Shown: positions 3,650-39,046 of the stretch, piece by piece
Layout: every line of letters starts with the position of its first letter
Numbering within the stretch: position 1 is the stretch's first letter
From: Selaginella moellendorffii
Lineage: Eukaryota > Plantae > Lycopodiophyta
Length of the DNA stretch: 64,000 nt
Direction: 5' to 3'
Assembly (NCBI RefSeq): GCF_000143415.4
Contig: NW_003314299.1
Location: 352,314-416,313, forward strand
Notes under the pieces: generated by a model
Told to the model about the DNA's origin: nothing
Databases searched by the model: none
What the model saw: only the letters and a program-made list of their open reading frames with translations
Position numbers and translations under genes: made by a program

Positions 3650-6007
3650 GGACTCGGTGTCTTGGTTCTTTGTATGCACAAAATGGTCATATGGAAGAGG
3701 CCAAGCTGATGTTTTCCCAAATGCCAGAGAGGAGTTTGATTTCTTTCAACATGATGTTATCTTCATTTGGTCGGTGTGGATGTGTACAAAAAGCTTACAG
3801 AATCTTTAACAACATGCCTGTTGAGAGTAGATGCTCAGGTAGATGCTTAGCTAGGCAGTTAGGATGATGTTGCATTAGGCAGTTGCCACAGCCCATGTAT
3901 ATATAGCTTCATATATACAATATGAGCAGTCGTTACCAGCAGTCGCTGCCTTTTTTATCATGGTATCAGAGCACAGATCTTGAGGACCTGTGAAGGATGA
4001 AGAAGAAGAAGAAGCTTCCAGATGCCAATGGCAGAAGCAGAGTAGCCTAGAGTGCAGCAACAAAGCAATGGCAGAGCCATACCAGCAGTGAGGAGCGGCA
4101 GATAGTAGCGACTCAGAAGCCCTGGAGCGGCAGAAGATGCTGATATGCTCCAAGAGAGGAGCAGCAGAGCAGCCAAGAAGCCCAGGAGCAGCAGAGCAGT
4201 GACTCAGCAGGCCAAGAAGCAGAACGGCGGCAGGAGTGGCCAAGATGCTCCAAGAGAGGAGCAGCAGCAGCCAAGTGAGCGGCGGCAGATAGCAGTGGCA
4301 GAGTTGGCTGAGAAGCCCAGCAGTGGCAAAAGAGCTCCAAGAGAGGAGCAGCAACAGCCAAAGGAGCGTGGCAAAGCAGCCAAGAGTGGCAGAGGCAGCA
4401 AGCCCTAGAGCAACAAGATGTTGTCAGTTGTATGCATGCTGAGCATCTTATGTTCAGGCTTTGTCTTAGTTTGTAGACACGCCTGAGTGGGAGTGTTGAG
4501 AGTAGATGCTCAGGTAGATGCTTAGTTAGGCAGTTAGGATGATGTGGCATTAGGCAGTTGCCACAGCCCATGTATATATAGCTTCATATATACAATATGA
4601 GCAGTCGTTACCAGCAGTCGCTGCCTTTTTTATCAATGCCTCACAGGGATTTAGTGTCTTGGAACACCATGATCTCTGCATATGCCTACAATGGGTATAT
4701 CAACGAGATGGTTCAGGTGTTTGATGCCATGCCCAAGAGAGATATGATCTCTTGGACGGTGGTTTTAACGTTGCATGCGAATAATAGAAATTTTGACATC
4801 TTTGAGAAAATGCCAGAAAGAGATCTAGCTGCTTGGAACTGTATCCTGAATTCATATTCCCAAAGTGGGTATCCCGCAGGAGGCAAGGCGTGTGTTTTAT
4901 TCTATGCCTCAGAGAAGTCTCCTTTCCTGGACTGTGATGTTAATCTGCTGCAAATTCTAGTTTACAGGAAACAAAGAATATATTCGAAGCCATTCCAGAA
5001 ATTAATCTAGTTTCGTGTACGTCAATGATTTCTGCATATGCCCAATCAGGGTATCTTTTGGAAGCTAAATCACTATTTGATAGAGTGCCATGCTGAAACA
5101 TGGTAACATGGACCGCGATGCTGGCAGCATGTGTGCACGCTGGCAGCATCTTCATGCCCGAGGACATCTTTCAAAAAATGCCATTCAAGAATCCAGTCGC
5201 ATGCAACACCACGCATGCAACACCATGCTAGATATGCCCACGCTGGCAAAGTTGAGCAGGCAAAGTGTATATTTGACAAAAATGCCATGTTGGAGTTTAG
5301 TATCGCGGAGTTCACTGCTGTATGGGATCAAGAGATATGGACTTGACACGACGATTTTTGGAAAAAATGCCATACTAGCAGCTAGTTTCTTGGAACACCA
5401 TGCTTGATGCTTATGCCCAAAACGGGTATATGGCAGAAGCAAGGTCATGTTTAATGCAATGGTGGAGAAGGACGTAATTTCTTGGACTATAATGCTTGCT
5501 GGCTATGGCCTTAGTGGCCAGAGTTTATTTGCAAGAAAAACTTTTGCCCAGATGCCAGGGAAGAATGAAGTTTCTTGGGATGCAATGCTCAGTGCATGTA
5601 CCCAAGCAGGGGATTCGGTTTCTATGTTTGAGTTGTTTCACACTATGCAGATGGCCGGCATTTACAACCAAGTTGGATTTGCCTCCGCTCTCAATGCTCA
5701 CGGCCAAGTTGGCAGTGTTAAATGTGCTAGAAGTTGTTTTGGTTCAATGGCTTTTGATTGTGGCATTCAGCCATGTCACCAGCATTACTCCTGCATAATC
5801 GATGGCTTAGCAAGAGCTGGTTACATTGACAATGCAAGAGAACTCATCGAAAACATGCCATTTGTTCCCACTTCTTTGGATTGGCTGTGCCTTTTAGCTG
5901 CATGTCGGAGCCTCAAGTGTGGAACCTGTGTATCAAAATGGGTGTCTGGAATTGCGAGCAGCAGAGCTATGTATCCTCTCCTGGCAAATGTATGGGCTTG
6001 GCATTGA
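3650..6007 (+). pseudogene. PLS/E-class PPR gene (PPR-A), split by a TRIM and frameshifted
   Basis: PPR motifs in ORFs 3577-3867, 4597-5010, 5131-5346 and 5447-6007 (MPERSLISFN, MPHRDLVSWN, QHYSCIIDGLARAG..MPFVP..W..LLAAC..YPLLANVW); several frame changes. Confidence 0.85.
3819..4635 (+). mobile_element. TRIM (non-autonomous miniature LTR retrotransposon), 817 bp
   Basis: 142-bp LTRs 3819-3960 and 4494-4635 (TG..CA, 2 mismatches seen), tRNA-iMet PBS TGGTATCAGAGC 3961-3972, PPT GAGTGGGAG 4485-4493, TSD ATGCC 3814-3818/4636-4640. Confidence 0.97.
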
Positions 6008-6590: not shown

Positions 6591-6690
6591 NNNNNNNNNN
6601 NNNNNNNNNNNNNNNNNNNNNNNNNNNNNNNNNNNNNNNNNNNNNNNNNNNNNNNNNNNNNNNNNNNNNNNNNNNNNNNNNNNNNNNNNN
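6591..6690. other. Assembly gap (100 N)
   Basis: N run. Confidence 1.
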
Positions 6691-6704: not shown

Positions 6705-8446
6705 TTAGACAAGCACGCTTGATTCCTCTGGCAACAGCACGCAACGTAGCTCCGACCTCTCAAACTCCTTGAAGGATCGGTCACCAGTGATGTAGAACAC
6801 AAAGGCGGGAGGGGACTTGTCAAGGATGTATGTCACTGCTCCAAGAGGGAGGCAGAGCATGGAGACGTGTACCGCAGCGAGTGCTGCCACTAGCCAAGCG
6901 AAAAGAAAGCCGTAGCTTGGGTAAAGCGTCCAGGCCTTCCCGAGTACTGGGAGTGCCATGGCGAAGACCGAGTCGGAGATACCTTCCCTGCCAAAGAAAC
7001 AGAAGAATATTAGAGAGCTTTGATTGATCAAAACTGTCACACCTGTAATCGAATGTCTGGAGATATGGATCTACAACCGCTGAAATGCCTCCCGTGGAGC
7101 ATCGAAACCAACTGAAGCCATTCTCCACAACACAGAAAGCATCGGCCTCTTTCGCCCGGGGACCGCTTGCTCCCCAAGTCGCGGCTGGTTGGAGCATGAT
7201 ATCAATCCTAGCACATTCACCAGAAACTTAGAGAACACCGTCATAACTTCGCTCTACCTCTTTTTCCCGGCCTGCCGCATCAGGTCTGGAAACTCGAAAT
7301 CGTAACAAATAGCTCCTCCAATCCGCCCGAGCTCGGTCTTGATGGCAGGAAGAATGGGAACCCCTGGAGTTCCATACCACTCCATGAATGGAACCAAGTG
7401 GGATTTCCTGTAGCTAAATCCAATGGAGCCATCGGGAAGAACGAGGTCGAAATAGTTCCCGACGCTCGCGTCCTTGTACTCGTAAGTGATGCCAACGTAG
7501 GCACCGTGCTGGGAAGCGATCTGTCCGGCTTTGAATTGGAGAGAATCCCTCTCCTGTTTGAGGTCGAGTTTCACCGCAGCCTCGGACCAGAGCACCAGTC
7601 GATCGCCGGCTCGGAGGCGCCGGCTCGTCCTGTTGAGCATCAAATCCATGTCCTCGTAGAAGAGGACCTTGCCCAGGACGCAAGAGACCGGCACTGTTTT
7701 CTTCATCGTGAGGGCGATGTCCTTCTGGAAGAAATCCCCCGAGAAAATGGAGACCCTGGCGCTGCCGTAGAACAAGATCGAGAGAGCAATGGCTCCAAAC
7801 GCCAGGGAGTGGCCGCGATGCATCTGCGTAGCACGCTTCTTGTCGGATTTTTCCATCTTGGAAAGATTCTCGTTGAGAACGGCCCTGTCGTGGAGAATCG
7901 CCGAGAACCACGCCATGAGGAATGCGATCCCATCGATCCCCCACATGCCGGCGCTCATCACCAACGGCAAGATTGTAACCTGGGAAACGGCGGGATGGAG
8001 GAAGGAGCCGACGCCGCCGAATCGATTCCACAACAACCATGCCGTGGTCCAGATCGACGAGAATACCAGCGGCTGGACGTTCTTGCTCGGTCAAAACGCT
8101 TCCTGTAGCCGATGCTTGCAAGAAATGGGAGGAGAAGAAACCACAGCGCCAGTGCCCAGATTATTCCCACAATTGGCACACTGCTGGCCGTGGAGTTGTC
8201 CGGGCTCACCTTTCCCGGGAAGAATGCCAAGAATGCCAGGCTCGCGGCAGTGGTGTGGAGGATGAGCGTCAGGAGAATTGTGAGCTCCGCAGAGCTCCAT
8301 GAGCAAGAATTGTGCTAAATCCCTGATTTGTGGAAGAAATGCAGGAGGAAAAATGGTTGGAGCCAAGAACAAATTGCAACAGATTGGAAACCAAAGAAGA
8401 AAGTGCACGCCACCGAGAAAATGGCCAACAGTGCCACCTTCTTCAT
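6705..8446 (-). pseudogene. Apolipoprotein N-acyltransferase (Lnt)-like membrane CN-hydrolase, copy 1; 3 exons; premature stop and frameshift
   Basis: ATG 8446 MKKVALL..; hydrophobic N-terminal half; nitrilase triad motifs VLWSEAA, YRKSHLVPFME, AICYDFEFPD. After introns 7208-7257 and 6988-7042 come VVENG..RCSTGGISAVVDP and TLYPSYG + TM helix. TAG at 8315-8317 and a 1-bp deletion near 8075 relative to copies 2 and 3. Confidence 0.85.
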
Positions 8447-11881: not shown

Positions 11882-12387
11882 TGTAAGGAACCAACTCCCC
11901 GAGGTGTCGAAGGCTAAAGGATCCCCAAAGCATGACCAAAATGACAAAGAGTTCATTGGATAGGACCGAGTTTGAGATCGAGTCCAAGACCGACTCTGAG
12001 ACCGAGTTCGAGATGGAGTCTGGGATCGAGTCCGAGGTTGACTCGGAGACCGAGTTTGAGACCGAGTTCAAGACAGAGTCCGAGATCCGAAATTGAGTCT
12101 GAAGTCGAGTCCGAGATCAGGTCCGAGATCGAGTCCGAGATTGAGTCTGAAGTTGGGTTCGAGATCGAGTCCGAGATCGAGTCCGAAGTCGGGTCCGAGA
12201 TCGAGTTCAAGATCGAGTCCGAGACCGAGTCCGAGTACTAATACAGGTCAAGGGGTGAAAGCCCAAAGCGTGCGTCTCCTGGGGGGGAGAGGGGGCTATA
12301 GGGGGTTCCAAAAGTATAGTAGGGATAGTGAGGTCCAAAAACCAGTCTTGAAAGTATAAACCAAAGCCCCCACTGGTATTCAAAGGA

Positions 12388-15300
12388 GTGAATGACTATA
12401 AGGTGGTGGAGGATTGGTTTTATAATATGGAGAACTATTTCCGAGTGTTGTGGTTACCAAGCTCAGAGAAGGTCCCATGTGCAAAACCATACTTGGCAGA
12501 AAACACTAAGTTTTGGTGGAGAATGATAGAGGCCAACGAAGGACTAATGGCCATTTGGGAAATGATGAAGGCGAGGATCCGTGTGACTTATATTCCCCCG
12601 AATGCTACTCTGCACCTAAGGGATGAGTTGAGTAGGCTGAAGCAAACCAGAACTATTCAAGAGTATATAAATGGGTTTATGGCAAAGAGGATACTAGTCA
12701 CAGATATGGGTGATATGGATGCGTTCCATGCCTTCATATCAGGCTTGCAAACCTGGGCTCGCGGTGAGGTGATGTGTTGGAACCCAACCAACTACAAGCT
12801 ATAGCTACAGCTACCAACTACAGCTATTAAGGTGCATTTCCATGATAACCTGCGAAAGGGGAACACAACGGGGTCGAAGTCCACGTTTAGCAAAAGGGCC
12901 AAACCAAGGGGAACATATAGCAAAAGGAAATTCAAGAAGAGTTTCTCTAAGAATGAGTCAGGATTCCGGAGAGGCAAATTCAATAGCTAGCGAGTGAGTA
13001 TATGTAGGAGTCAAGTAAAAAGAGACAAACCTACAGATAAGAAGGGCAAGTCAGCTAGTAGCGTGGGAAACAACATATGCTACAACTGTGGTGAAATGGG
13101 ACACTTTTCAAAGGAATATCCCTACCCAAAAAAGGCCAGAGCCAATATGGCCATTAAGTCGGGTAAAATCCAAATTGATGTACGTGTTCCAGTCCCTAAC
13201 TCAAAGTTACTCATTACACAAGCAACTTTGGTAGACAGTCGTTCATGACATCTACTAACCCTCTAAGGGAAGCTTGGAGGTAGCTTTGTTAAGATCCTTA
13301 TTGACACAGGTGCTTCGGATAATTTTGTGGTTGTAGACATAGTTCGGCAAGCCAGACTAACGGTGTAGCGACTGGGTGAACTAAGGATTATAGAGTTTGT
13401 TCAAGGTAGCCAAAGCACCGATGAGGTACTTCGACAAGCGAGAGTTAAAGTGGGGACATGGAAAGTAGACATGGATTTCACCGTGTTGGACATGGCAGGA
13501 TTTGATGTAATCTTCAGCATGGATTGGTTCAATTGGTTCGTGGTAGCCCTGCATGGACAAAGTAGGAACTTTATGGTACTAGCAAATGCCAAGGAGAAAG
13601 ATCCAGGGTGGAGGCCCAGGATCTAAAGGTAGGGCAATGCAAGGCCAAAGATTCCTACCTAAACTTGGTGTCCACAAGAGGACAACTCATTAAAGGAACT
13701 AAAACAGCATTTTTGTGCTTACCCTCAGTGAGGAGTGACAAAAGATCGGGAACAAAAGAAGTACCTTTAGTGATCCAGCGAGTGTTGGACCAATTCCAGG
13801 ATATCATGTCGGAGGAGCTACCAGCGGGGTTGCCCCCTACACGACCGATAGAACACAAGATTGAGCTGGTCGAGGGTGCTAAGGCTGTGGTTCGTCCCCC
13901 CTATCATTTAAACGAAAAGGAACTCGAGGAGCTCAAGCACCAACTAGAGGAGTTGGTGGACAAAGGGTATGTTAGGTTAAGCAAGTCGCCGTATGGGGCG
14001 TCGGTGTTATTTGTGGAAAAGAAAGATGGATCTATGCGCATGTGCATAGACTACCGGTTGCTCAACAAGTATACAAAGAAGAACAAGTACCCTTTGCCAA
14101 GGATTAAGGACCTGTTCGATAAGTTGGGAAAGGCAAAATACTTCTTGAAGATCGACCTAAGGTCAGGATACTACCAGATTAGGGTAGTAGAGGAAGATGT
14201 CGAGAAGACAATCTGTCGAACAAGGTATGGAAACTTCGAGTTTCTAGTGATGCCCTTCGGGCTATGTAGTGCACCGGCAACATTTTCAGCGTTGATAAAC
14301 CATATCTTTGTATCCTATATGGATCATTTCGTGGTTGTCTATATTGACGACATTTTGATCTATAGCAAGACACTAGAAAAGCATGCCAAACACTTGACGA
14401 AGGTGTTTGAGAAGTTAAGGGAACACTAGCTGTATGCTAAAGAGAGCAAATGTAACTTGATATTACCAAATTTTGGTAAGGACTTTGAGGTAGAAACGGA
14501 TGCTTCGGACTTTGTGTTGGGCACAATGTTGAAGCAGGACAACCATCCAGTAGCGTTCTTCTTGAAAAAGTTGGATAAAGCTCAGCGAAAGTGGCCTACC
14601 CATGAGAAGGAATTGTTTGCGGTGGTCAATGCGCTCAGTGGAGACACTACCATGGGAGACACTTCAAGGTTTATATGGATGGCAATGAAACACTTCTTAT
14701 CACAACCCGACCTGAGGGGGAAACAGAGTCGGTGGGCCAATGCTTTGGTCGAGTTTGATTGCAAGATTCTGTACAAGCCTGGGAAGAGCAACATCGTGGC
14801 AGATGTTCTAAGTCGAAAAGTGAGCTTGAAGTTGGCGATATCCAGCACAATGACAACCTTTTGGGATGATGTACGGACAGCATATGAGAACGATGGTCTA
14901 GCACAAGAAGTGTTGCTAAGGAATCTAGAGGCGCAAGAAGCTCACCAGAGAGGTGAGCTGCCAATGGAAGAGAAAACGGGTTATGTGGTATGCAATGGAC
15001 TCATCTATTACAAACAAACAAAGGTGTATATTCCAGAAGGGGAACTAAGGAAAGTAGCTTTAAAAGAGTGTCATAATGAACCTCTTGCGGGACACGGCAG
15101 AGTGCCCAAAATGATGGGCTTACTCAAGAGGAAGTATCACTAGCCAGATATGGCTAAAAACATCCAAGACTATGTAAAGACATGTCCAATATGTCAGCAG
15201 GTCAAAGCCGTGATTAAGGTTAGTGGGCACTTGTTACAAAGCATCCCAATTCCAGATTGTCCATAGGAATGTTTTATGATGGACTTCATCACGGGACTCC

Positions 15301-16430: not shown

Positions 16431-17267
16431 ATGTACTTATGCAAAGTTCAATTAAAAGCATCCATTTGTGGAGTTGAGCAATGGCATATGTTAGGACCCG
16501 AAGGTAAGCTAATTAGCATGGGTTAACTAGGTCGACCAGGCGTAAAGAACTACGCCTGACTCCCCACAAAGATGTCAAATCCATAGACGTATTTTACAGA
16601 GGTTGGGTTCGAGTCCCAACCCCCTAGTAAAGCAAGGTTGGGTTCAAGTCCCAACCCCATACTAGGGCATGGTGGGGTGAGGAGTATAGGGACACCTATA
16701 TTCTATTGTCATGGGCTTTTGGCCAGGGAGGCTAACTTAGGCACACCACTAAGTGAGGGGATGCCCCCAGAGACGTAGTCAACAAGTCGTAGGATTAAAA
16801 AGAAAGACATTCGATATGGGCATCGAACTTCTTTTATGGGTGGTGGAGTTGTAAGGAACCAACTCCCCGAGGTGTCAAAGGCTAAAAGATCCCCAAAATC
16901 ATGACCGAAATGATAAAGAGTTCATCGGATGGGACCGAGTCTAAGATCGAGTCCAAAACCAACTCTGAGAATGAGTTCGAGATGGAGTCCGGGATCGAGT
17001 CCGAGGCCGACTCAGAGACCAAGTTTGAGACCAAGTTCAAGACAGAGTCCAAGATCTAAAATCGGGTCCAAGACCGAGTCCGAAATTGAGTCCGAAGTCG
17101 AGTCCGAGATCGGGTCCGAGATCAAATCCGAGATCGAGTCCGAGACCAAGTCCAAAGTTGGGTCTGAGATCGAGTCCGAGACCAAGTCTAAGTACTAATA
17201 TAGGTCAAGGGGTGAAAGCCCAAAGCGTGCGTCTCCCAGGGAGGGAGGGGGGGGGGGGGGGGGGGGG

Positions 17268-17367
17268 NNNNNNNNNNNNNNNNNNNNNNNNNNNNNNNNN
17301 NNNNNNNNNNNNNNNNNNNNNNNNNNNNNNNNNNNNNNNNNNNNNNNNNNNNNNNNNNNNNNNNNNN
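17268..17367. other. Assembly gap (100 N) after a poly-G run
   Basis: N run. Confidence 1.
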
Positions 17368-17526: not shown

Positions 17527-18826
17527 GTGAATGCACAGCCTCATCCAAACGAAGCAGAATCTCAAGGAAGTTCTTGCGGCCGATGTGGCCTTCCACCCCA
17601 TCTTCTGCTCCAAACAGACAATGCTGGCAGTGAGAACAAAAACATGTACGTCTTCGCGTACTTGGCGATGCTTGTTGCCAAAGGCATATTTGAAACGGTT
17701 ACACTTGGCTTTCTCATGGTTGGGCACACTCATGAAGACGTCGATGCCATGTTCAGTCACCTGGCAGAGTTCCTCCGGCGATCTAATGTCCTCACCCTCC
17801 CACAACTCTACGATGAATTCCAAAATTGCATCAAAGGCACTGTTGAAGCTGCACTTCTGACAGAGGTTCCAGACTTTAAGGGGTTTGTAAGAGGCTACAT
17901 CAGGGACATATCCGAAACGCTGATTGGCCACTCCAAGCCTCTTCAGTTTCATTTCAGCATGTGTGACGGTGCTCTAGTGATGAGATACAAGATGAGAGAA
18001 TGGGACACAGTGTGGCTGCCAGTGGACAGCATTGAACTCTTCAAGAGAGATCCCATAACTGGGGAACCTATGATTCCTCAGGGTTCCCCACGGCCGATGC
18101 ACCCGGATGGACTCAAAGACCAGGAAAGTATAATGGCCGGGATTAGACAGCATATTGCCTTCTGGAAGAGGGGGTTGGTGTTTGGTGGAGAATCTTATTT
18201 TCAGAGGTGCAAGCCTTTGCTCGAATACTGGGAGAAGATTATATCTGCTATCCAAAATGGGCCGGTTGTATATGAAGAATTGGAAGAGTCCTTTTGGCCA
18301 GAACCCAGAGCACCAGATAGTAGCGGAACAATGTCCTCTGGAAATGCAATGACAGATAACGATGTTGAGGATCACTATTGTGGGCCGAGGAACAAGAAGC
18401 CGGATTCAGCATTCAATCCAGTACAGGTTTGCAAAGGAATGGTCGTGCTTGTCAGACCCAGTAATAAAAAACAAATGATATGGGTGGGGCGCTGCATCAC
18501 TGATGCAGAGGAGGACGCGGAAACTAACTCCTTCAATGTAACTGTGGAGTGGTTCAAGCCAAGTTCCGGATATACGAAGGATTGCCTAGAAAAGAGATGG
18601 GTGCTGAATCCAAGGGATCCCAGCATGAGCATATCGGTGGATAATGTTGTGCATGGTTGGATGCGGAAGCAGAGTGCCACCATCACCTTGCCAGACCATG
18701 CAAGAGATGCAGCAAGAGCATTCATAACCCGGGTTCAAGGTGAGATTCATTAATATTCCTTTACTAAGTTTCTAATGTATTTTATTTCAAGGTGAACAAT
18801 CCGAATCTGAATCAGAGGAGGCGTGA
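17527..18826 (+). CDS. C-terminal part of a Sola/DUF7869-type DDE transposase with a beta-rich (BAH/Tudor-like) C-terminal domain
   Basis: 408-aa open frame with LLQTDNAGSENKN..FLMVGHTHEDVDAMFS. Probable 52-bp intron 18740-18791 gives a last exon GEQSESESEEA*. The 5' part is missing in or near the gap. Confidence 0.75.
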
Positions 18827-19299
18827 TGGCATGTGGCCTTACGCCATTCCTAGGTGAGATGATACAAATAACAAGTATAAATTCTTAGTTGTTCTAGCAA
18901 ATCTTACTTAAAAGTTCAAGGTGAACAAGCCGAATATGAATTCATCGGATTGTTATAACAAATTGCGAGGTGATGGCATGAGGCGATACGCCATTTGAGA
19001 GTGGTAGCCATTCCTATATGAGGTGAGTGAAATATTTATTAGAAATACCTCATTCAATTGTGCACTTCTAAGTCTTGGTCCACTCAATACTGTTTGCATG
19101 TTTCTATTTTGATGTGACATATGCATTTACCAATCACACGTGCATAATTCTAATAATATGGCGTGTGGCCCATATTAATGGCACATAAACCCATATTGTG
19201 GGCTTACGTGCTTTATGTACCATCATTCCCTTGCAGCGTATGTGTTGGTTTCCTTTTATAACACAACGAACTCCATATTTTAGGGTGAAGAGCGTTCTC

Positions 19300-19557
19300 A
19301 TGGCAAGCACAAAATCTGTAAGTGAGGCAGAAAAGGAGACGGAGAAGGAGATAGGTGAAGATGTAGAATATATAAGTCTTCCAAACTCCCCGTACTATAC
19401 TCCAGGTGATCATTTTTCTGAATAAACGGCAACATTAACAACTATCGAGAACACCCCAGTAACGTCAGAGACAACAATCCAAAGCAAAACAACTGACCTG
19501 GAGAAGGATGATAGTACCGCTGAGAGTACCAAAAAGGAGGTGTCCACTAGCGCTTAG
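19300..19557 (+). pseudogene. Small acidic/Thr-rich ORF remnant with one internal stop; homologous to 50363-50608
   Basis: EDVEYISLPNSPYYTP..TPVTSETTIQSK..ESTKK aligns by eye with ENINYISLLQSLYYTL..APITYEITVHSK..KSTKK. Confidence 0.5.
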
Positions 19558-20769: not shown

Positions 20770-23700
20770 TAAATTTGGAGCCGAACTCCAAGCCCGTTGC
20801 GCTACGAAACGAGGGTCTAGTACATTCCCATAAGCACCAGCTCCCTATATCCAACACCTGCATGCAAAATGGTGTCAAACAGAGTCTGGCACAGTTTTGG
20901 CATACAAGTGGCTGGAGGGTACCCCACTAAGTATAGCACTGTGGAGCTTGGGCTTAGAACCAAGCCAGATGCAGAACAAGGAGCGACATAGCCCAACAGG
21001 AGCCAAACTAATGTCTCAGGTGGTCGAACATGCATTCCAACTACTATCCCTACTATACATTTGAAAAACACATAGGGTTCCTACCTTATATTATCCGATT
21101 TAAGTACACGGTCATTGACCAGCTTCTCAACTAGCTCAAGTGGGAACAATAAAGGGAATCAATTGTACCGACCTTCTGCCATCATGGCAGTAAAGAAAGA
21201 GTGTCCGTAAGGACTGGCTGACAAGTATCTTTCGATACCTGAAGTCACATTCGCGACACTCTCTCCCCCTTGGGGAAGATCGACATCCTCGTCAATGCAT
21301 ACCCGAGTCTAGCAAACCGTCAAGGAAACAACTCCGAAAGTTAATGAAAAGCACACTATGTGGGAAATGCACTGACTTAAATGAGTTATGGAACGACCTC
21401 TCCTCTACGTCCAAAGACATTAGGACTCAAACACCCTCCAGCCATCACTGACAAGGAAATGACCAATAGAGTTTGCCACCCTTGCTGCTCCGAGTACCAC
21501 TCGGCTTACAAAGGAATGATACATCCCTGCCCGCAGGGACATAGGGAGAAGGCCAGAGGCCCAACTTCCCCTGAGCAAGAAATCAACCCCATCGGGAAGA
21601 TTTAGACAACTATTATAAATTGGCAGATTAAGTTGTTTACACAACCACGCCTCTTTGCGAAAAAATGAGTCATCGAGAGAACTTGTGATTAGTCTATAAT
21701 AGTTATCCCCATGGTTATGGATTGAACTCATGCATGGAAGTGTTGAAGTCAACTTGCCAATACTGACCCAAGTACTAATGAACGAAAGGAACGATACTTT
21801 GATTTATAGAAATATATTACTTTATTAATTTGCAAAATTTATTACAAAGTTTACAAAAGCTAGTCTTTATTACTATTCTCATACTCCATGACAAGCTCAC
21901 GAACATGTTTAAGATTCTTAAAAGGTTCCCAAGTTTATTCACAAGTTATGTAACCTTTCCACTTAACTAGATATTCCTTGGAATGACCACCACGAGCTTT
22001 GCGAGACAAGAGAATTGTCTCGACCTCATACTCCATGTCACCATTGACAACTTCCGGAAGGGGACAAATGTCCACAGAGCAATCCTCATCAACACGATAT
22101 GGTGCCAGTAAACTGACATAAAACACATCATGGACATGGGACAACTCATCTGGAAGATCCAACTTATAAGATACATCACCAATTCGCTTCACCACCCGAA
22201 AGGGTCCAACATATCTCGGCAACAGCTTCCGAGATAACCATCCCTTAATGTTCAAGTTCCGGGAAAATAGCTATACCTAATTCCCACTTGATAGAATACA
22301 TCCCGATGATGCTAATCCTTATCATGTCAATACCTATCCTAAGCTTTGCCCATCGCCTCAATAGCCCTAGACCAACCTTGGCGTAGCTGCTCTGCATAAG
22401 TCTCAACAACTAGGACCAACACTTTGGACATTGGTTTCGGTACAATAATCTGTTGAGGAACCCCATGAGCATTCCCTTGCAGCATCTTCTATGGAGAACA
22501 GCCTATAGCAATGTGAAATGTGTTGTTATAACAAATTTTTGCTGTGTCTAAATGCTCAACCCAATCACGTTGGACTGCCGCGACATAATACCACAGATAA
22601 TCCTCAACTTGAGCATTCATGCATTTGATCTGCCCATCAGTTTGAGGATGATAAGCCGTACTAAACTTCAACTTGGTACCAAACAATTGGAACAATGTGC
22701 CCCAAAACGTCCCCGTAAACCTCGAATCTCTATCCGAGATCATCTCTTCAGAAAGACCACAAACCCGCACTACTTCATGGAAAAAGAGCTTTGCTGCTTG
22801 TTTTGCATTTACTGTTCCCACAGTTGGAATGAAGTGTGCAATCTTTGATAACTGATCCACAACCACCATCAAAGTATCATAACCCTTAGACTTCGGCAAG
22901 CAAGTGACAAAATCAAGTGTCACATTCTGAAATGGCTATGTCGGTGCTGGAATCCACTGCAACTTCCTAGCCTGCTTCTCAGTTCTATGCTTACATTGCT
23001 GGCATATAAGGCATGAACGGACATAGTCTGCTACATCACCTTCCATACCAAACCAGAAAAATCCCTTTTTCAACGAAGCTAGAGTCTTTCGTTGTTCACC
23101 ATGTCCCGCTACTGGAACATCTTGATATTCCCTCAAAAATAACTGTTGCAAATCCTTAGAGGGAAGATACAATCTTTCTTGCTTATAGAATATAAGCCCA
23201 TCCTAAATTGAGAAGTGAAGCTTTGCATTGGTGCGGTTAGCAACTTTCACTGCTTCGCTACCAGGGTTCTGTTTCAACAACCCTGCACGGCATAAGATTG
23301 CCTTCGCCAATGGATCACTTCCATACGAAGCCCTAACATCCTCCAACCAGTCCGAACTGATTGCCAATATTGCCCGGAACTGAGTTTGACGACTCAATGC
23401 ATCTAGGACAATATTGTCTTTACTAGGTCTATATATGATTTCAATATCATATCTAGCAAGCTTCTCTTACCAACAAGCCTGCTTCGGCGTAAGCTTAGGC
23501 TGCGTAGCAAAGTAGCTTAGTGTGTTATTATCTATATAAACTTTGGTGTGTCCACCCAAGTAGTATCTCCAGTGTTCTAAGGCCAACACTATAGCAAACA
23601 TCTCTTTCTCATGCATTGGCCATCTTCGTTGAGTTTCATCCAATTTCTTGGAATAAAATACAACAGGATAACCATGTCGCCTTAGCGTAACACCAACCGC

Positions 23701-24515
23701 TTTGTCACAATCTTGCTGCAATATAGCACCAATAGCATAGCCAGATGCATCACAATACACTTCAAAGGGTTTATCAAAATCTAGGATCCTAAGAACAAGA
23801 ACCGAAGTCAAGATCTCCTTCAACCGTACAAAAGCACATTGGCAAGCTAGTGTCCAATGAAATGGTATATTACTCTTTATCAACTCAGTCAACAGAAGAG
23901 CAATTTTTGCAAAATTCCGGACAAACTTGCGATAGTATCCCACCAAACCGAGAAAGAAATGAATATTTGATACAGTGGTCGGAACTTCCCAGGATTTCAC
24001 TACTTCCACCTTCTTTGGATCAACCTCAATTACGCCACCACCAACTATATGTCCGAGAAAGTTTACACGCAATTGTCCAAAAGCACATTTACTTTGCTTA
24101 GCATATAATTTGTGTTTGCACAATTTCTGAAACACCAGCTCCAAGTGTTTCAAATGATCTTCCAATGTTTCACTGAAGATTAGAACATCGTTGATGTATA
24201 GGACAACAAATATGTCCAAATAATCTCCAAATATTTTATCCATCATAGTGCTGAACATTGCCAGAGCATTGCATAACCCGAATGGCATGACAAGGAACTC
24301 ATAAAATCCATACCAAGTTTTAAAGGCTGTTTTCTCCACGTCCTGATCCGCCACCCATATTTGATGATACCCAGACTGCAAATCAAGTTGCGTAAAATAC
24401 TTAGCCTTTAAGAGTTGGTCAAACAAGTCATCAATGCGAGGCAAAGGATAACTAGTCTTGACCGTGATCTTGTTGAGTGCCCAATAGTTGATACACATCC
24501 TCATGGTTCCATCCT
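20770..24515 (-). mobile_element. 5'-truncated Ty3/gypsy chromovirus (RT-RH-INT-chromodomain, 3' UTR, PPT, 3' LTR)
   Basis: ORFs 23467-24504 (RT/RH), 22936-23172, 22489-22923 (integrase), 21935-22255 (YVGPF, EYEVE..EYLVKWKGY); PPT at 21259-21270; LTR starts TGT at 21258 running leftward, left end approximate. Confidence 0.88.
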
Positions 24516-24519
24516 TATT

Positions 24520-26247
24520 TCACATATAGTGGGGATTTTTTGTTTGGGAGCTTGTGTAGACATTTGCTAGTAAAGCATAGGGTGTCTTGGGGGTTGCGTT
24601 GGTTACGTCCATTACAGATCTCACTACATCGTCTCCCAGTCTAAGATTGTTATAATCCTCGTGGCTCTTGCATGCTCCGAGAAGGCACGTCCACTCGAGA
24701 GCACTGGGAACGAACGGCATGCTTAAGATTAGATCTTTGGCATCGTGAAGGTGGCTGGCTCGGCTCAAGAGATCTACCATGCAACTGTAGTGCTGCCTTG
24801 TGGGCTCAATGGCGTGATCCACAACCATGGAAGCGAAGAAGCTCTTTCCCGCTTGAAAGCTGTGATGTGTTTGGGGAATCGACGGCCTGCATTTCGTTGA
24901 AGAGATGAAAGGCCTTGCTGGCAGTGGTGCTTACTCGTGCATATGAAGCTATCATGGAGCTCCACAAGATTTGGTCTCTGTCAGGGGATGTATCAAAAAG
25001 TTTCCTTGCATATACAATATGGCCTTCTTGGAAAAATGCAGATGTCAAGGTCACAACGTTGCGTTCTAGCATGCTATGAAAGAGTAAAGCAGCTTCACGT
25101 AGTTTGCTAGTTAGAACAAACGCATTTAACATTGTGTTCCACGAAACCATATCCATTTCGGGCATCTTGTTAAAGAGTCTTAAACCAAAGTCACAATGCC
25201 CTCATTGGGCATACGCCGAAAGAACAGAGTTCCAAGAGCACAGATCCCGCTGCGGAATTTGATCAAAGGTGGCCTTCACAAGCTCCAAGTCTGAGGGTTG
25301 TGAGAGAAACATTATCATACAGGAAGTAAGATCAAGCTCCAGCATTTGATAGAAAAAGCTCTTGGTTTCCTCCCCGGGGCTGTTCTTGGCAAGAACAGCG
25401 AGCATTGTTGTCCACGACGAGAGAGCTCTCTGCGGCATGGAGTCAAATATAAGCTTTGATTGTCTAGCATCACGGCAGCATCGCATCACGGTGTTGCACG
25501 AAACGAGATCTATCTCAGGCATCTCGCGGAAAATCCTCTGTGCCGAATCGACATCCTCGTTCAGTGCGTATGCGCCGAGCATCGCGGTCCAGGCAACGAG
25601 ATCGTGCTGCGGCATTGCATCAAACAAAAGCTTTGCTCCGTGCAAATCTCCGCCCTGCGACAAGGCAACCAAGATTGTCGTCCATGACACAAGGTCACGA
25701 GCCTCCATAGAATCAAAAACACGTTCGACTCCCTCTACATGCCCGTTCCGGGCATATGCCGCAAGAATGGAATTCCACGACACGAGATCATACTCGGGCA
25801 TCCCAGAGATAGTCCTCTCGGCACTTTGTAGATCCCAGCTTGTGTGTGGACTGACAAGATTGCATTCCATGAGAGAAGGCTGTGTTGCGGCATCTCATCA
25901 AATGTTTTAGAATATGCCCACTCCGGGCATATGCCAAGAGCATGGATGTCCATGCAAGGACATCTTTTTGCGGTATTTTTTCGAAGATCTCTTTTGCATG
26001 TTTAAGATGGGAGTTCTGGGTGTAAGCTCGAAACATGAAAGCCCACGAAAAGGAGTCTTTGTGTTTGATGTTGTATCAAAGATTTGGCGTGCCTCTTGTG
26101 GGCTTCCATAAACATCTCAATGAGTTTGTTGCTGAGGAAGGAATCATCAGCAAGTGGATGATTCCTTTTAAGATTCAAGTAAATCTCACTTGCTTCATAA
26201 AGGCTTTTGCAGGATTGAATGAAATGAATGTTACACTTTCTGTTCAT
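24520..26247 (-). pseudogene. PLS/E-class PPR gene (PPR-B), copy 1
   Basis: ORFs 26002-26259, 25788-26036, 25202-25870, 24806-25165 and 24520-24828 with repeated MP..DLVSW motifs and HYSCMVDLL..MPFVP..W..LLGAC..YALLANVY; stops and frameshifts. Confidence 0.9.
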
Positions 26248-27942
26248 AGTCCAACCCAAAACATTGTTGTGATTAAATAATATTTAATGATAATATTAAA
26301 AACTCATTATGAGAAGAATAAGTTTTTTGTAACAATGTGTAGTTTGTTAATAATGGTATTATTTCTATTTAGTATTTTTTATTAACCTAATTGATTAATC
26401 CGAATTAAAAGTAGAATAATCTAGAATATACTAAAAAGTGTTTAAATACAAACTTAATCTAATTGCTAGATGGTAGAATATCTTAAAATATCAAAGTTAC
26501 ATTATACCATTAACACAACTAGGTCATGGGATATATTGAAATGGGGTACAAAGCAACTAGAGGTAGAGGGTGATGTGTCTCTTACTCCAACACCCTCTTT
26601 ATTGTAATTGGCTTGTTTCCCTCATTCTTGGAGATCTTGGTAATCAATTCTTTCTAAAATTAAATACAATCCCAAAACCTTTAACCATTTTTAACTTATT
26701 AAACAATGGTATACTTTACCATTTCTCAACCTTAGAGGCACCAAGTATTCCAAGATTTTTAATAAACTGGAAAAAGGTGGTGCACTTTTATTCATAAACA
26801 TTTTCCCTTTATATTTAATTGTTTCTCAAGTAACTTTTCAAGATTCTTTTGAGAGGCCCATTCTCTTTCTAGATGTTAATCAAATATATAGTATGATTCC
26901 TTTATCTAGTTTAGAGTTCTTAAAAGTTCATTTAACCCACTACTATTCAAACCCAAGGATATTTAACTTTAAATATCTCTCTTAACTAATTGAAAAATGA
27001 GGTGTAATAAATTCTTTCCTTTTATATTTAAACCCTTATACAAATTATTCTCTTTAGTTGTTTACAATCTACAAATAAGTTAAAAAATTTATGCAACTAA
27101 CATGGTTAGATTGTTCTAAGAATTATAAACTTGTTTGAACATAATATTTTTTTGGATTAGTTTCAATAGCTTTTGTAATTTGGTGGAAACAAAGTGAAAA
27201 TCCAAAAATTTATAGTACAAGAATCAAAAGAACCCAAAAACTTCTTTAAGTGATGGTAAGTTATCTCTATAGCCATATTAAACACTAATAACCCCTAAGT
27301 GGCAGCTTAAACAAATATAATTATATCATGGTGGGAAAAGAAGATGTAGATATAGACAAGAGGATAGAAGTTTTGTATTACATCAAGTAGTATATTTTTA
27401 ATTTTTTTTCTCTACATTTCAGTTAACTTTAGAGGTTTTGTCTATGTTTAAGATATAGTATTAAATACTGATTACAAACGAATTTTATGAGGGAAATTAA
27501 GGTAGATTCTAAAATATACCTGAATATTTATAATATATTCCTTTCACCTTAATAAAAATATAAATTACCACCTACATTCAAACAAGCACCAAGAGACATG
27601 ACGAAGGTGGCACTGTTGGCCATTCTCTCGGTGGTGTGCACTTTCTTCTCTGGTTTCCAATCCGTTGCAATTTGTTCTTGGCTTCAACCATTTTTCCTCC
27701 TGCATTTCTTCCACAAATCAGGGATTTCGCGCAATCCTTGCTCATGGCGCTCACAATTCTCCTGGCGCTCATCCTCCACACCACCGCCGCGAGCCTGGTG
27801 TTCCTGGCATTCTTCCTGGGAAAGGTGAGCTCGGACAACTCCACCGCCAGCAGCGTGCCAATTGTGGGAATAATCTGGGCACTGGTGCTGTGGATGTTTC
27901 TTCTCCCGTTTCTTGCAAGCATCGGCTACAGGAAGCGTTTTG

Positions 27943-30900
27943 TGTTAGAGCCACGTGGCGTACAGCCACCTGGCTTGAGTCGCATTTCTTCAGTTTAGGG
28001 CTTTCTTAGTTTTCTTTCCCATCCTGTGTGAGATCCATCCCAGGGGATTGTTCTGGGAGTGTTCTCATTCTCTATAGAGTGCTAGGCCGTGAGGCCTGGC
28101 TTCTCTCATCATGGTATCAGAGCAATAGGTTAGATTTTTTTGGCACGAGCAGTGCCATAGATGCTAGGACAGGATGGCGTCGTCTTCTTCCTCCAGAGAC
28201 ATGGAGCAGTTTGATGGGACGAATTTCCTTGCCTGGAAAGAACATGCTCAGTTCTGGTTCATGAGGTGGGGATTGTGGCCTGTAGTATCTGGATCAAGAA
28301 AATGTCTGTCCAAGGACGATGATGATACAGATCCATACAATGAGTGGAAAGATCTGGATGCTAGGGCAAATGGAGCATTAGGAGGTGGACTTGGCCCTCT
28401 CTACAGTGTCCACGTGAATGTGGAGAAGAGTTCTGCTGAGAATTGGAAGTCAATTTGTGAAATTATGGGAGTGGACCTGCAAGAAGACGTGGACGTGATT
28501 CTTCATCGCAGTGAGTTATACAGCCTGGAGCAGCAACCACACGAGCGCGTGCAAGACTACATCACAAGACTTCAGCGCAAAGTGGTGGAGATTCGATTGC
28601 TGGACCCAGAAGCTACTGTGACAGATCAAGAGTTTAATGCAGTTCTGTTCAAGGGGCTTACAACTCGTGCTATGAAGTCTTATCTTCGTTATATCAAGAA
28701 GATTCCCGACATTACACAGCGGCAGATTTTTGCTGAGCTTGTTCAGCACGAGAAAACCGTTATAGGTGAAGGCAATGCTGCTGAGCAGGACGGGATTGCC
28801 ATGGTGACTCGTGGTAATCAGCACGGACAAGCAGGGCGCTCCTCTATCTTTAATCGACTTGGAAATAAGCGCTCCAACAGCACCGAGGAAAAGCCAGCCA
28901 CCAAGCAAGAATTCAATTTGAAGTGTGGGACGTGTTCAAAGCGTGGGCACCTGAGCAGGGATTGTCCAGTGAAGAAGCAACGTCGTGAGACAAAATTGAA
29001 AGCTGAGCGTGGATCTTCCTCTAGTGCGGCACCACGTTTTAAAAGTCGACGCCGAGATGAAGGTGATGATGAAGACTCTTCCGCTGCAGCCAATGGCTTG
29101 TCATGGATGACTCGAGGAGTAGAGGTGGATACCACAAGCCGTGTTCTTTGGCTGGATTCGGCAGCAACGAATCACTCAACTTTTGACCGTGAGCTATTTT
29201 TGGAGATGAGGAAATGCACTGGCCAAGTGCGACTCACAGATAACAGCTTGTTAGCGGTTGAAGGTGTGGGCACGATTGAAGTGCGTCTACCGACAGGCTT
29301 GGTGGTTCCAGTCAAGCATGTGTGGTACATCCCCAAGGCTCAACATTCCTTGGTGTCCCTTGGACAAATGATGGAGCAAGGATTCAACTTGGAGTTTTGT
29401 GGTGATCGTGTTAAGATCACACATCCAGAGGTTGGACATGTGGCTTCAGCAAGCAAGATAGGACGACTGTTCCGGATGGATTGCGAGGTTTGTGTTCCAG
29501 GGAAGCTGCTAGCTACGATGACAGTGGCTACTGCGAGTTCATCTTCAGGGGGAGCTGCAGATATCCAAACTTGGCATCGTCGACTTGGCCACGTGAATCA
29601 CAAGACGATCCAGCAGTTGCAGCGAGACCACGTGGTTGATGGCTTGGCCATCACGTCTTTTTCAATGCCATTATGTGAGCCATGCATCATGGGAAAGCAG
29701 CATCGTCGGGCGTTCAACTCTGGCGGGAGTGTTCGGGCGACAAGTCCTCTTCAGCTGGTTCACTCAGACTTATGTGGCCCTTTTCAAGTGATGACACAGC
29801 GTAAGAAGAGGTACTTTATTTCGTTTATTGATGATGCTACGAGGTATGTGGCTGTTAAGTTCTTAGCTACTAAGGACGAAGCTTTGCTAGCATTTAAGGC
29901 TTATAAGCATGAAGTGGAGAACCAGCTCGATTTACGCATCAAAGTGCTCCGCTCTGATGGAGGAGGTGAGTACGTGTCCGTCAATTTTTCTGATTACTGC
30001 GAGAAAGCAGGAATTCAGCGGCAATTCACAGTTCCATACACTCCTGAGCTTAACGGGGTAGCTGAGCGGTTTAACAGGACAGTGGTGGAGCTGGCTAGGA
30101 CGATGATTGCCGATGCTGGTCTTCCGCCTAGGTTTTGGGATCATGCTATAGCCACAGCTGTCTTCGTGCGTAATAGGGTGTTGACCACCGCTGTTAAATC
30201 CAAGAAGTGTATATTTCTGGGCTATAGTGATGAGCAGCGAGGATATCGACTCCTTCATCTAGACTCGGGAAAAGAGTTTGTGAGTCGAGATGTCATCTTT
30301 GATGAATCTCGTGTGTATTTTCAACGTCACAAGGATCCAGGAGTTCCTTCTACAGGTTTTCTTAGTGGAGACAGTAGGGCGAGCTCACAGCCTGTTTTCT
30401 TTCATCCATGGGAAGATGAGGAGGATAATCCTCTACCTCGACTTGGCTGTGCTTATGCTCCAGCTGCAGGGGGAGCTTCAACCTCTGCTGTGACACGAGC
30501 TCCAGAGCCTGATCACGTTCCTGAGGTGGTTCCTGATCCTGAGCCCGAGCACAATATTCCTGAACCTGAGGATATGGTTCCTGAACCTGTGCGTCACCGA
30601 GATCCTGATGTTATCCAGGTTTTGAGCCGCTCTGGTCGCCCTTTAACCTATACAGCGAAGGGTGAAGCTTATCAGCGAGAGCAAGCTGAGAAGCGAGCAC
30701 GAGTAGCCGTTAGAGCTTCTTATCATCAGAGTCGAACGGCTATGTTCACAGCAGCAGAGGTGAAGATTCCTGTTACGCTTGCACAAGCTAAGAAATCTCC
30801 TTATGCTGCTGCGTGGGGTGAAGCTATTGATGCTGAGATGCGAGCTCATGCAAAGAATGAAACCTGGTATCTTCCTGATGAAGTTCCTCACAATGCTAAT

Positions 30901-32567: not shown

Positions 32568-35298
32568 TTTTGATCGAGCAAGAACGTCCCAGCCGCTGGT
32601 ATTCGCGTCGGTCTGGACCACGGCGTGGTTGTTGTGGAATCGATTCGGTGGTGTCGGCTCCTTCCTCCATCCTGCCGTTTCCCAGGTTACAATCTTGCCG
32701 CTGGTGATGAGCGCCGGCGTGTGGGGGATCGATGGGATCGCATTCCTCATGGCGTGGTTCTCGGCAATTCTCCATGACAGGACCGTTCTCGACGAGAATC
32801 TTTCCAAGATGGAAAAATCCGACAAGAAGCGTTCTATGCTGCAGCGTTTGGGGCCATTGCTCTCTCAATCTTGTTCTACGGAAGCGCCAGGGTCTCGATC
32901 TTCTCGGGCGATTTCTTCCAGAAGGACATCGCCCTCACGATGAAGAAAACAGTGCCGGTCTCTTGCGTCCTGGGCAAGCTCCTCTTCTACGAGGACATGG
33001 ATGTGATGCTCAACAAGACGAACCAGCGCCTCCGAGCCGGCGATCGATTGGTCCTCTGGTCCGAGGCTGCGGTGAAACTCGACCTCAAACAGGAGAGGGA
33101 TTCTCTCCAACTCAAAGCCGGACAGATCGCTTCCCAGCACGGCGGCTACGTTGGCATCACTTACGAGTACAAGGACGCGAGTACTGGAAGAGTCGGGAAC
33201 TATTTCGACCTCGTTCTTCCCGATGGCTCCATTGGATTTACCTACAGGAAATCCCACTTGGTTCCATTCGTGGAGTGGTATGGAACTCCAGGGGATCCCA
33301 TTCTTCCTATCATCAAGACCGAGCTCGGCCGGATTGGAGGAGCTATTTGTTACAATTTCGAGTTCCCAGACCTGATGCACCAGGCCGGGAAAAAGAGGTA
33401 GAGCGCAGTTATGATGGTGTTCTCTAAGTTTCTGGTGAATGTTTTTAGGATTGATATCATGCTCCAGCCAGCCGCGACTTGGGGACCAACTGGTCCCCAG
33501 GTGAAAGAGGCCGATGCTTTTCGTGTTGTGGAGAATGGCTTTAGTTGATTTCGATGCTCCACGGGAGGTGTTTCAGCGGTTGTAGATCCATATCTCCAGA
33601 CATTCGATTACAGGTGTGACAGTTTTGATCAATCAAAGCTCTCTAATATTCTTCTGTTTCTTTGGCAGGGAAGGTATCTCCGACTCAGTCTTCGCCATGG
33701 GACTCCCAGTACTCGGGAAGGCCTGGACGCTTTACCCAAGCTACGGCTTTCTTTTCGCTTGGCTAGTGGCAGCACTCGCTGCAGTACACGTCTCCATGCT
33801 CTGCCTCCCTTGTCAGCTGCTCAAGGGAGAACATCCATATCCTGTCCTCCGCTGTATATGATTTTTACATCCAACTGGAAGAAACAAAAAAGAAAAAGGA
33901 TTAGATCACAAAAGCTTCGAACGATCCTCTAAAAACTTGCCTCACACTCGATCAATCTCTTCAACAGTGTCTCCACAACCTGAGGAGCCTCCGCTCTGCA
34001 GTGACATACATCCTTGACAAGTCCCCTCCTGCCTTTGTGTTCTACATCACTGGTGACCGATCCTTCAAGGAGTTTGAGAGGTCGGAGCTACATTGCGTGC
34101 TGTTGTCAGAGGAATCAAATGCGCTTGTCTAAGATTCCTGTGAAGCCCAATCTGTAAGGAAGTGTGTACAAATCATGGGTGATATGGACGTAGCACTTGC
34201 ATTGACTTAATTGTCGTTTGGTGCAACGATTTGGAGGAGTTCCAAGGCGTTGGATTGAGTCGGCTGGAGTGTCGATTGCAAAGAAGGCAGCCCCACGCTG
34301 CCATGACGAGGGCATCGCGTTCCATCTCCATCGCTCCGGCGTGTGAGCATCGTGGGGCAAAGGAATATTTGCTTTGTTAGTACCTATCATCTTATTAAAC
34401 AAACATTGATCGTTTTCTAGTTTTCCATGAAGAATTTTGAGAACATTCGCATAGAATCAAACACATTCCCTCAGGCAGATCATCAAACACAATTTTCGCC
34501 TGCTGCACTTTCCACACACCTCAATCGCTAGGTATTGCAAGGTATCTGTCTGATTGAAGTTGCTTGCGATCTCTCAGAGCCTCTGGTGATTTCGTCCAGG
34601 AGGTCCACGCTCAGATCCTGGGAATGTTGGGTGTTATATAGACAAATGATTTGTTTTTTTCCCAATACGACAGATTGCTAGGGACAAGAAAGTGAGGTAT
34701 GATCAATGATAAACAAAGGCTAGAGGGTCAGAAACTCTATTTAGCATCCCAATGCTAAGACCAACACACAAAATAGAGCTAAATGGAGTTTGGTGCTATG
34801 AAGTATTAATGCTTCATGGGAACATCAAGAATCCAGTCGCATGAAATGTAATTGGTACTTCTAGTCTTAAATTCTCGAGCAATTTGACAACATAATCCAG
34901 GCAGCAGGCGAGGGCGCCCGCCAAAGGAGAACCCGACGCGAATCATAAGAAAACAGGAGGCAAGAGAGAGCTAGAAGAATCAAAGCTTTTACTCGAGAGA
35001 AGACAAGAGAAGAGCGCTCAAAACGTTGTATTGTAAGTGGATGTTTCCCTTTTTTTGGATTTTACTTGAATCACTATAATACCTGAAGTACATAGAATTG
35101 CTGAATAGATTCTACGAGATTCTACTTACTAGTTCCAAAACAGTGCTAAGATCGTGGCCAGCTCAATCCTTGGCTGTAAAAAAACAAACAAGTTCAATAC
35201 AAACAAATTGTACGTATTATTTGCGGAAGTTATGGAAAACCCAGGAATATGTGTATTTACAAACATTCATATGCATGGCTATTTCTCATAGAGAGTAT

Positions 35299-38976: not shown

Positions 38977-38977
<1 letters not shown>

Positions 38978-39046
<69 letters not shown>
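38978..39046. repeat. (TA)n microsatellite
   Basis: Perfect TA run of about 34 units. Confidence 0.97.

Follow-up and report, generated by a model that had tools for sequence, protein, structure and literature searches.

A 64,000-nucleotide stretch of the Selaginella moellendorffii contig NW_003314299.1 (positions 352,314 to 416,313, hereafter the window) holds three copies of a gene that resembles the bacterial gene for Lnt, a lipoprotein N-acyltransferase. The copies lie at 8446-6705 on the minus strand (copy 1) and at 27598-34132 and 39223-40849 on the plus strand (copies 2 and 3), and they are probably paralogues in decay, derived from a green-plant gene of vertical descent that encodes an Lnt-like membrane enzyme, and spread by segmental duplication together with fragments of pentatricopeptide repeat (PPR) genes. 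All three are pseudogenes that yield no full-length protein, since each bears disabling lesions, and this content of the window is in itself ordinary. An earlier note, made from the DNA sequence alone, had read the copies as a bacterial-type membrane enzyme family that a land plant had acquired from a bacterium or a fungus, naturalised with introns and amplified. Lnt is regarded as an envelope enzyme restricted to bacteria and as an antibiotic target. A full-text literature search found no paper on eukaryotic Lnt-like proteins, and the public database entries for members of the family read 'uncharacterized' or 'CN hydrolase domain-containing'. The family would offer a clean case of a bacterial-looking plant gene that was inherited vertically and seems foreign through its loss in seed plants. 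The window illustrates its growth and decay in Selaginella, with segmental duplication alongside PPR fragments and a young copia insertion.

The three copies were found at the positions given in the earlier note and share 92-95% pairwise identity over long blocks. They contain the motifs named there, namely LWSE, YRK.HLVPF.E, AICYD, VENGFSWFRCSTGG.SAVVDP and TLYPSYG, and the codons of the catalytic triad (Glu, Lys, Cys) are preserved in all of them. Each copy has two short GT-AG introns, the first 50 nt long in copy 1 and 51 nt in the other two copies, the second 55 nt long throughout; the exception is the donor of intron 2 in copy 3, where GT has become AT (40515, plus strand). The longest open reading frame (ORF; 7254-8036, minus strand, 260 aa) matched Pfam CN_hydrolase with E = 1.4e-7, above the gathering score, and its top NCBIfam match was TIGR00546 lnt (E = 2.5e-11), which spanned the membrane part and reached into the nitrilase part. 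The consensus gene described earlier is therefore real as regards its copies and motifs; that none of the three copies is intact had been left implicit. The host context is that of a land plant, with 95-96% DNA identity between the copies and S. moellendorffii loci, and the flanks include PPR fragments as well as copia and gypsy elements.

Intact paralogues and descent within green plants

The 260-aa ORF, used as query in an exhaustive HMMER search, gave 985 matches, of which the best 150 were listed, about 40 of them with an organism label. The top match was XP_024539505 of S. moellendorffii (P0001, 545 aa; 91% identity). An intact tandem pair (545 and 543 aa) lies on GL377603.1 among p450, hydrolase and Med26 genes, and a second site on the same scaffold carries an intact 549-aa gene adjoining the fragment P0002, PPR fragments and calreticulin. 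Another intact gene of 549 aa (P0153) is located on GL377628.1. Intact loci were taken at 153879-175638 of GL377603.1 and 416988-438743 of GL377628.1, with introns of 60/62 nt in the gene models. Selaginella thus has at least four intact genes of 543-549 aa besides fragments, and the amplification postulated in the earlier note, as well as an intact paralogue elsewhere in the genome, was confirmed. In DNA, copy 1 shares 95.6-95.9% identity with the intact genes at loci L008 and L009 and, entered into the tree with X at its two breaks, was sister to P0153 (Shimodaira-Hasegawa-like approximate likelihood ratio test, SH-aLRT, 97). The window copies reach at most about 96% identity to S. moellendorffii loci and encode no annotated protein exactly, which indicates that they form a further, unannotated cluster of the family.

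The ratio of nonsynonymous to synonymous substitution rates (dN/dS) was 0.21-0.37 between subfamilies of the intact paralogues and 0.55 in the near-identical tandem pair. Copy 1 gave 0.33-0.51 against its closest intact relatives, and the comparison of copies 2 and 3 gave 0.69. Judged by these ratios, selection acts on the Lnt-like family, and the copies in the window drift. Contamination was rejected for the intact genes, which lie on plant scaffolds of 1.1-1.75 Mb among plant genes, and for the window copies in view of their PPR and plant retroelement surroundings.

Labelled relatives from plants comprised Sphagnum species (on chromosomes of 18-23 Mb), the liverwort Calypogeia fissa (on a 34 Mb contig) and the zygnematophyte Closterium. 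Chlorophytes were represented by Chromochloris, Pleodorina and a pedinophyte, and other eukaryotes by the fungi Dichotomocladium, Mortierella, Basidiobolus and Paraglomus, by Paratrimastix and Paulinella, and by MMETSP marine protists. Trees were built with FastTree (122 rows) and with IQ-TREE under LG+C20 with posterior mean site frequencies (PMSF; 86 rows), the SH-aLRT support being taken from a quick search. In both trees all eukaryotic rows fell into one clade, which excluded the nearest bacteria (SH-aLRT 99). A green clade (SH-aLRT 95) united chlorophytes (99) and streptophytes (92) as sisters, and among the latter Closterium stood outside a group of Selaginella with liverwort plus Sphagnum. 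The approximately unbiased (AU) test rejected the best tree that joined Selaginella to fungal clades (difference in log-likelihood, delta lnL, 65; p = 0.0028).

Both Selaginella introns are in phase 2, the first after QAGEK and the second after FDH. Introns 3 and 4 of Sphagnum occupy the same sites in the same phase, with the 165-nt exon between them identical, and intron 4 of Closterium falls at the site of the first Selaginella intron. A liverwort-like contig (L004, Logan SRR33208280) leaves homology at a GT at this very site, and the introns of Pleodorina and Dichotomocladium are found at other sites. The order within the green clade, the AU rejection and the shared intron sites and phases together argue for vertical descent.

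Two observations concern the gene models themselves. On contig L004, at about position 1440, P0003 (482 aa, 64% identical to P0180 of Calypogeia fissa) runs into the unspliced intron at the phase-2 site, and its last 27 residues, at the C-terminus, are therefore not real protein. The Closterium models P0084, P0157 and P0122 (locus L005) seem to be mispredicted in part, their C-termini being divergent or truncated beyond the region of the catalytic Cys.

Given orthologues across green plants in species-tree order, the horizontal acquisition by a land plant proposed in the earlier note had to be abandoned. A recent transfer from a bacterium or fungus into Selaginella or land plants, followed by intron gain and amplification, would draw on a fold otherwise known from bacteria, on early-diverging fungi as the nearest labelled relatives past the green lineage (Dichotomocladium, Basidiobolus, Mortierella and Paraglomus, 32-36% identity) and on the lack of a seed-plant member among the labelled matches, but is hardly credible in the face of the AU rejection, of eukaryotes set apart from the nearest bacteria, of two intron sites in common with Sphagnum and one with Closterium while fungal introns lie elsewhere, and of bryophyte and algal orthologues that group with Selaginella and, on chromosome-scale contigs of 18-34 Mb, are unlikely to be contaminants. 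Absence of the family from seed plants is suggested by the labelled matches, about 40 of the best 150 of 985.

Deeper origin and bacterial kin

The family is part of an Lnt-like clade that spans eukaryotes as a whole; among bacteria, non-canonical Lnt-like proteins from Actinomycetota and Chloroflexota come nearest to this clade. The closest ones detected were Lnt-like paralogues, mainly of Actinomycetota (Nocardiopsis, Nonomuraea, Streptomyces and Amycolatopsis), of Ktedonobacteria and other Chloroflexota, and of some Alphaproteobacteria. They share with the family a short arm 3 (an element of Lnt considered below), the motif C-[YF]-D-x-D-F-P and a similar length and topology, and they too remain below the TIGR00546 cut-off, with 99-121 bits. 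They differ in forming a separate clade (SH-aLRT 99), and their identity to the plant proteins, about 30-45%, holds for the catalytic half only. The loci of these paralogues (L011-L090) encode C-[YF]-D instead of C-Y-E.

It is quite possible, though we lean against it, that one or more ancient transfers of such a non-canonical bacterial gene, or transfers from eukaryote to eukaryote, founded the eukaryotic or the green clade. The patchy spread over green plants, early fungi, Paratrimastix, Paulinella and marine protists would suit such an event, as would two features that the eukaryotic clade has in common with its nearest bacterial kin in soil Actinomycetota, Ktedonobacteria, other Chloroflexota and a few Alphaproteobacteria, namely a short arm 3 and the motif C-[YF]-D..FP; moreover, no intron site is common to the chlorophyte, the fungus and the streptophytes. 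However, the eukaryotes form a single clade (SH-aLRT 99) whose internal order the trees do not settle, an early presence followed by many losses fits equally well, and no bacterial sequence was nested in the eukaryotic clade among the best 150 representatives. An ancient transfer is compatible with vertical descent for everything inside green plants. A plastid, that is cyanobacterial, origin was rejected in view of the non-photosynthetic carriers and of the 80 best bacterial loci, among which there was no cyanobacterium.

Relation to Lnt and possible function

The apolipoprotein N-acyltransferase Lnt of Proteobacteria (E. coli Lnt; PDB 5N6H, 5XHQ, 5VRG and 6NWR; TIGR00546; branch 9 of the nitrilase superfamily) is among the closest known enzymes. 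An AlphaFold2 model of P0001, built from a 16-sequence alignment, reached a predicted local distance difference test score (pLDDT) of 86 and a predicted template-modelling score (pTM) of 0.87. It places helices at residues 3-20, 24-40, 50-75, 86-118, 126-144, 167-198, 201-236 and 478-501 and a beta-sandwich at 243-470, a predicted arrangement that matches the plan of Lnt, with eight transmembrane helices and the nitrilase domain between the seventh and the eighth. A hydropathy scan gave about six hydrophobic segments, fewer than the model, and supports a multi-pass membrane protein only. In a Foldseek search of the PDB with this model the top 24 matches were all Lnt from E. coli or P. aeruginosa; their alignments span about 550 columns, and the TM-scores are 0.65 for the query and 0.72 for the target. 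Soluble enzymes of the nitrilase family ranked after them and covered only about 250 residues. The Lnt architecture recognised in the earlier note, a multi-pass membrane domain followed by a nitrilase domain (extracytoplasmic in Lnt) and a final transmembrane helix, is thus supported at the level of the predicted fold, which matches bacterial Lnt over its full length.

Sequence searches were less specific than the fold search. A single-sequence phmmer search of the PDB did not retrieve Lnt, a profile search ranked soluble Nit proteins first, and only the fold search gave the full-length match to Lnt. Against hidden Markov models, TIGR00546 was the top NCBIfam match for every family member tested, with 43 bits for the window ORF, 68 for P0001, 80 for P0153, 63 for P0154 of the Sphagnum cluster, 55 for Calypogeia and 99 for Chromochloris; E. 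coli Lnt, the positive control, scored 411 bits. The Pfam CN_hydrolase model (PF00795, gathering threshold 23.2 bits) was passed by the ORF 7254-8036 (31.6 bits), by P0001 (45.2) and by P0153 (52.6). Pfam LNT_N (PF20154, gathering threshold 27.1 bits) did not match the Selaginella proteins and gave 18.1 bits with P0154, 25.2 with Basidiobolus and 28.1 with Mortierella; in the predicted structure the corresponding region of P0001 is covered by the fold-level match to Lnt.

In a MAFFT alignment with E. coli Lnt (sequence taken from NC_000913.3), E290, K352 and C385 of P0001 align with E267, K335 and C387, and this triad is invariant across 18 eukaryotic members. The replacement of C-Y-E by C-Y/F-D, noticed before in the window copies, extends to the family: all 18 members have Asp for Lnt Glu389, and 15 of the 18 have Phe for Tyr388. 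Equivalents of Lnt Pro129 and Gly447 are conserved. Fold and topology, the Glu-Lys-Cys triad, the nucleophile elbow and a similar motif in the region of the L1 loop and H6 are common to the family and Lnt. To these a Glu in H-L/P-V-P-F-x-E (HLVPFGE or HLVPFAE) can be added as the counterpart of Glu343, an assignment made by eye only, as MAFFT put Glu343 of E. coli in the arm-3 insertion. The family differs from Lnt in an overall identity of only 16-17% and in the spliceosomal introns of its plant genes.

Several points weigh against our interpretation. With 54-99 bits the family stays below the curated TIGR00546 cut-off of 132.9. Trp237, Tyr388, Glu389 and, in arm 3, Pro353, Phe358 and Met362 are essential in E. 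coli Lnt besides the triad (PMC5500888). In the family arm 3 and Trp237 have no aligned counterpart and Glu389 is replaced by Asp, differences which imply an acceptor site unlike that of Lnt. The nitrilase domain is in sequence about equally close to soluble Nit amidases and to Lnt. Bacterial lipoproteins, on which Lnt acts, have no known equivalent in eukaryotes (PMC8689077). The labelled homologues, on which the taxonomic picture is based, are only about 40 of the 150 listed. Copy 1, finally, with two lesions only, one of them in a homopolymer of a draft assembly, could be a very recent pseudogene or in part an assembly error. The architecture is that of Lnt, yet the family is not Lnt by curated criteria. 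The term 'bacterial-type' used in the earlier note also proved too strong for a clade that spans eukaryotes, stands apart from bacteria (SH-aLRT 99) and scores below that cut-off.

These differences bear on an alternative which we consider unlikely, namely that the enzyme is no acyltransferase but a hydrolase tethered to the membrane, either an amidase or a lipid or protein deacylase. Soluble amidases such as Nit1, Nit2/omega-amidase and N-carbamoylputrescine amidase share the alpha-beta-beta-alpha domain, the triad and the C-Y-D..FP motif with the family, and their sequence E-values to it are similar to those of Lnt. The equal scores of the nitrilase domain, the presence of the C-Y/F-D..FP motif of soluble Nit proteins and the missing acceptor-side arms of Lnt would all be expected of a hydrolase. 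The soluble enzymes lack a membrane domain, and their match is confined to about 250 of the 545 residues. Against a hydrolase, the family retains the full membrane scaffold of Lnt, and with it the L1 lid region and the Pro kink, by which the active site is positioned at the lipid portal. In Lnt such a scaffold marks the use of a lipid as acyl donor (PMC5500888), and transfer and hydrolysis have the same first half-reaction.

The intact members of the family are probably Lnt-like integral membrane enzymes with seven N-terminal transmembrane helices and one at the C-terminus, as modelled for P0001. The nitrilase-fold domain with its Glu-Lys-Cys triad is predicted to sit immediately above the membrane on its non-cytoplasmic side, and the protein would accordingly belong to the secretory pathway, with its catalytic domain in the lumen. 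As in Lnt, a membrane glycerophospholipid would donate an acyl chain to the Cys, which would carry it as a thioester and then pass it to an amine on a membrane-associated acceptor other than a bacterial lipoprotein; alternatively, the second half-reaction might be a hydrolysis of the amidase or lipase type. We infer this acyl-transfer chemistry and the lipid donor by analogy with the published mechanism of Lnt, in which the Cys is acylated by a membrane phospholipid and the acyl group is then transferred to an amine (PMC5500888).

The substrate of Lnt is the diacylglyceryl-Cys apolipoprotein that Lgt and LspA make in the same organism. Eukaryotic hosts are without the Lgt/Lsp pathway (PMC8689077; the Selaginella genome was not searched for Lgt/Lsp), so another acceptor would be required. 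Tentatively, and with doubts that outweigh our confidence, we propose that several eukaryotic supergroups, represented by green plants as far as lycophytes, early-diverging fungi, Paratrimastix, Paulinella and marine protists, keep an ancient Lnt-like enzyme which N-acylates a eukaryotic acceptor at the luminal or outer face of a membrane by the ping-pong chemistry of Lnt. Candidate acceptors are the head-group amine of a phospholipid and the N-terminus of a secreted or membrane protein. A conserved, selected and intron-bearing enzyme of Lnt shape in organisms without bacterial lipoproteins implies some other acceptor and possibly a new eukaryotic step of lipid or protein N-acylation. If the proposal is correct, the family would represent an undescribed lipid-modification pathway that was apparently lost in seed plants, animals and Dikarya.

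Decay of the window copies and other features

Copy 1 (6705-8446, minus strand) is the least damaged. Its exons lie at 8446-7258, 7207-7043 and 6987-6705, the stop codon TAA is at 6707-6705, and the introns at 7257-7208 (50 nt) and 7042-6988 (55 nt) both keep GT-AG borders. The catalytic codons, between 7299 and 7583, are all intact: Glu GAG at 7583-7581, Lys AAA at 7406-7404 and Cys TGT at 7307-7305. The Cys is followed by Tyr (7304-7302) and Asp (7301-7299), and the five residues were mapped onto E267, K335, C387, Y388 and E389 of E. coli Lnt. The copy reads through apart from two lesions. The first is an in-frame TAG at codon 44 (8315-8317), where copies 2 and 3 carry TCG and TTG. The second is a deletion of one nucleotide at 8076-8077, which shifts the frame at codon 125: where copy 1 has CGTCCAGCC, the intact paralogues and the other two copies have CGTCCCAGCC. 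The deletion may be an assembly error, as it is situated in a run of C.

That copy 1 is a live gene and both lesions are errors of the draft assembly is improbable. Such a reading could point to the small number of disabling changes (two, one of them a missing C in a CCC run), to a gap of 100 N placed 15 bp past the stop codon, to the undamaged splice sites and catalytic codons and to the dN/dS of 0.33 against the intact gene at L008. The TAG at codon 44, however, is a base substitution and not an error of homopolymer length, and both neighbours in the window are unambiguously dead. Assembly gaps of 100 N occur in the window at 6591-6690 and 17268-17367; with the former, the 3' flank of copy 1 is missing.

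In copy 2 (27598-34132, plus strand) the introns lie at 33398-33448 (51 nt) and 33614-33668 (55 nt). Its lesions were listed from an alignment after removal of a copia element. Deletions of 10 nt at 27745/27746 and of 19 nt at 32842/32843 shift the frame, and a stop codon TGA stands at 33546-33548. The Asp that follows the catalytic Cys-Tyr has been changed to Asn (33348-33356, codons TGT TAC AAT), and the last exon contains a foreign insert of about 187 bp (~33811-33997). The copia-type long terminal repeat (LTR) retrotransposon, 4625 bp in length, sits in exon 1 at 27943-32567 (plus strand) and has an intact gag-pol ORF of 1389 aa (28174-32343). Its LTRs of 169 bp differ by 2 mismatches, and a target-site duplication TTTTG flanks it at 27938-27942 and 32568-32572; the element is apparently young and complete. 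The primer-binding site is of the tRNA-Met type (TGGTATCAGAGC).

Copy 3 (39223-40849, plus strand) has lost its ATG start codon and has its introns at 40299-40349 and 40515-40569, the second with the altered donor mentioned above. It has deletions of 83 nt at 39390/39391, of 11, 6 and 7 nt at 39732-39768 and of 5 nt at 39949/39950. Further deletions amount to 2 nt at 40592/40593 and 1 nt at 40633/40634, and several of the deletions shift the frame.

The duplication extends upstream of the genes: 24864-27395 (plus strand), ahead of copy 2, and 36480-38982, ahead of copy 3, share 93% identity. This unit includes PPR gene fragments at 25202-25870 and 36098-37380 (both minus strand). At the S. moellendorffii locus L009, too, Lnt-like copies are accompanied by PPR fragments, which lie there at 7814-8273 and 18921-19536; apparently both kinds of sequence were amplified together, within a single unit of segmental duplication. 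A further PPR fragment lies at 5447-6007 (plus strand), and each Lnt-like copy in the window has PPR fragments alongside.

Elsewhere in the window, fragments of gypsy-type reverse transcriptase, RNase H and integrase and a 408-aa ORF with DUF7869 were found at 13608-15143 (plus strand), 23467-24504 (minus strand) and 17527-18753 (plus strand). Tandem arrays of a 12-nt repeat (CCGAGATGGAGT and variants) occupy 1-390, 1577-1846, 11967-12235, 16940-17155, 57648-57756 and 63872-64000. They are probably part of a dispersed repeat, and all six coincide with a strong positive GC skew.

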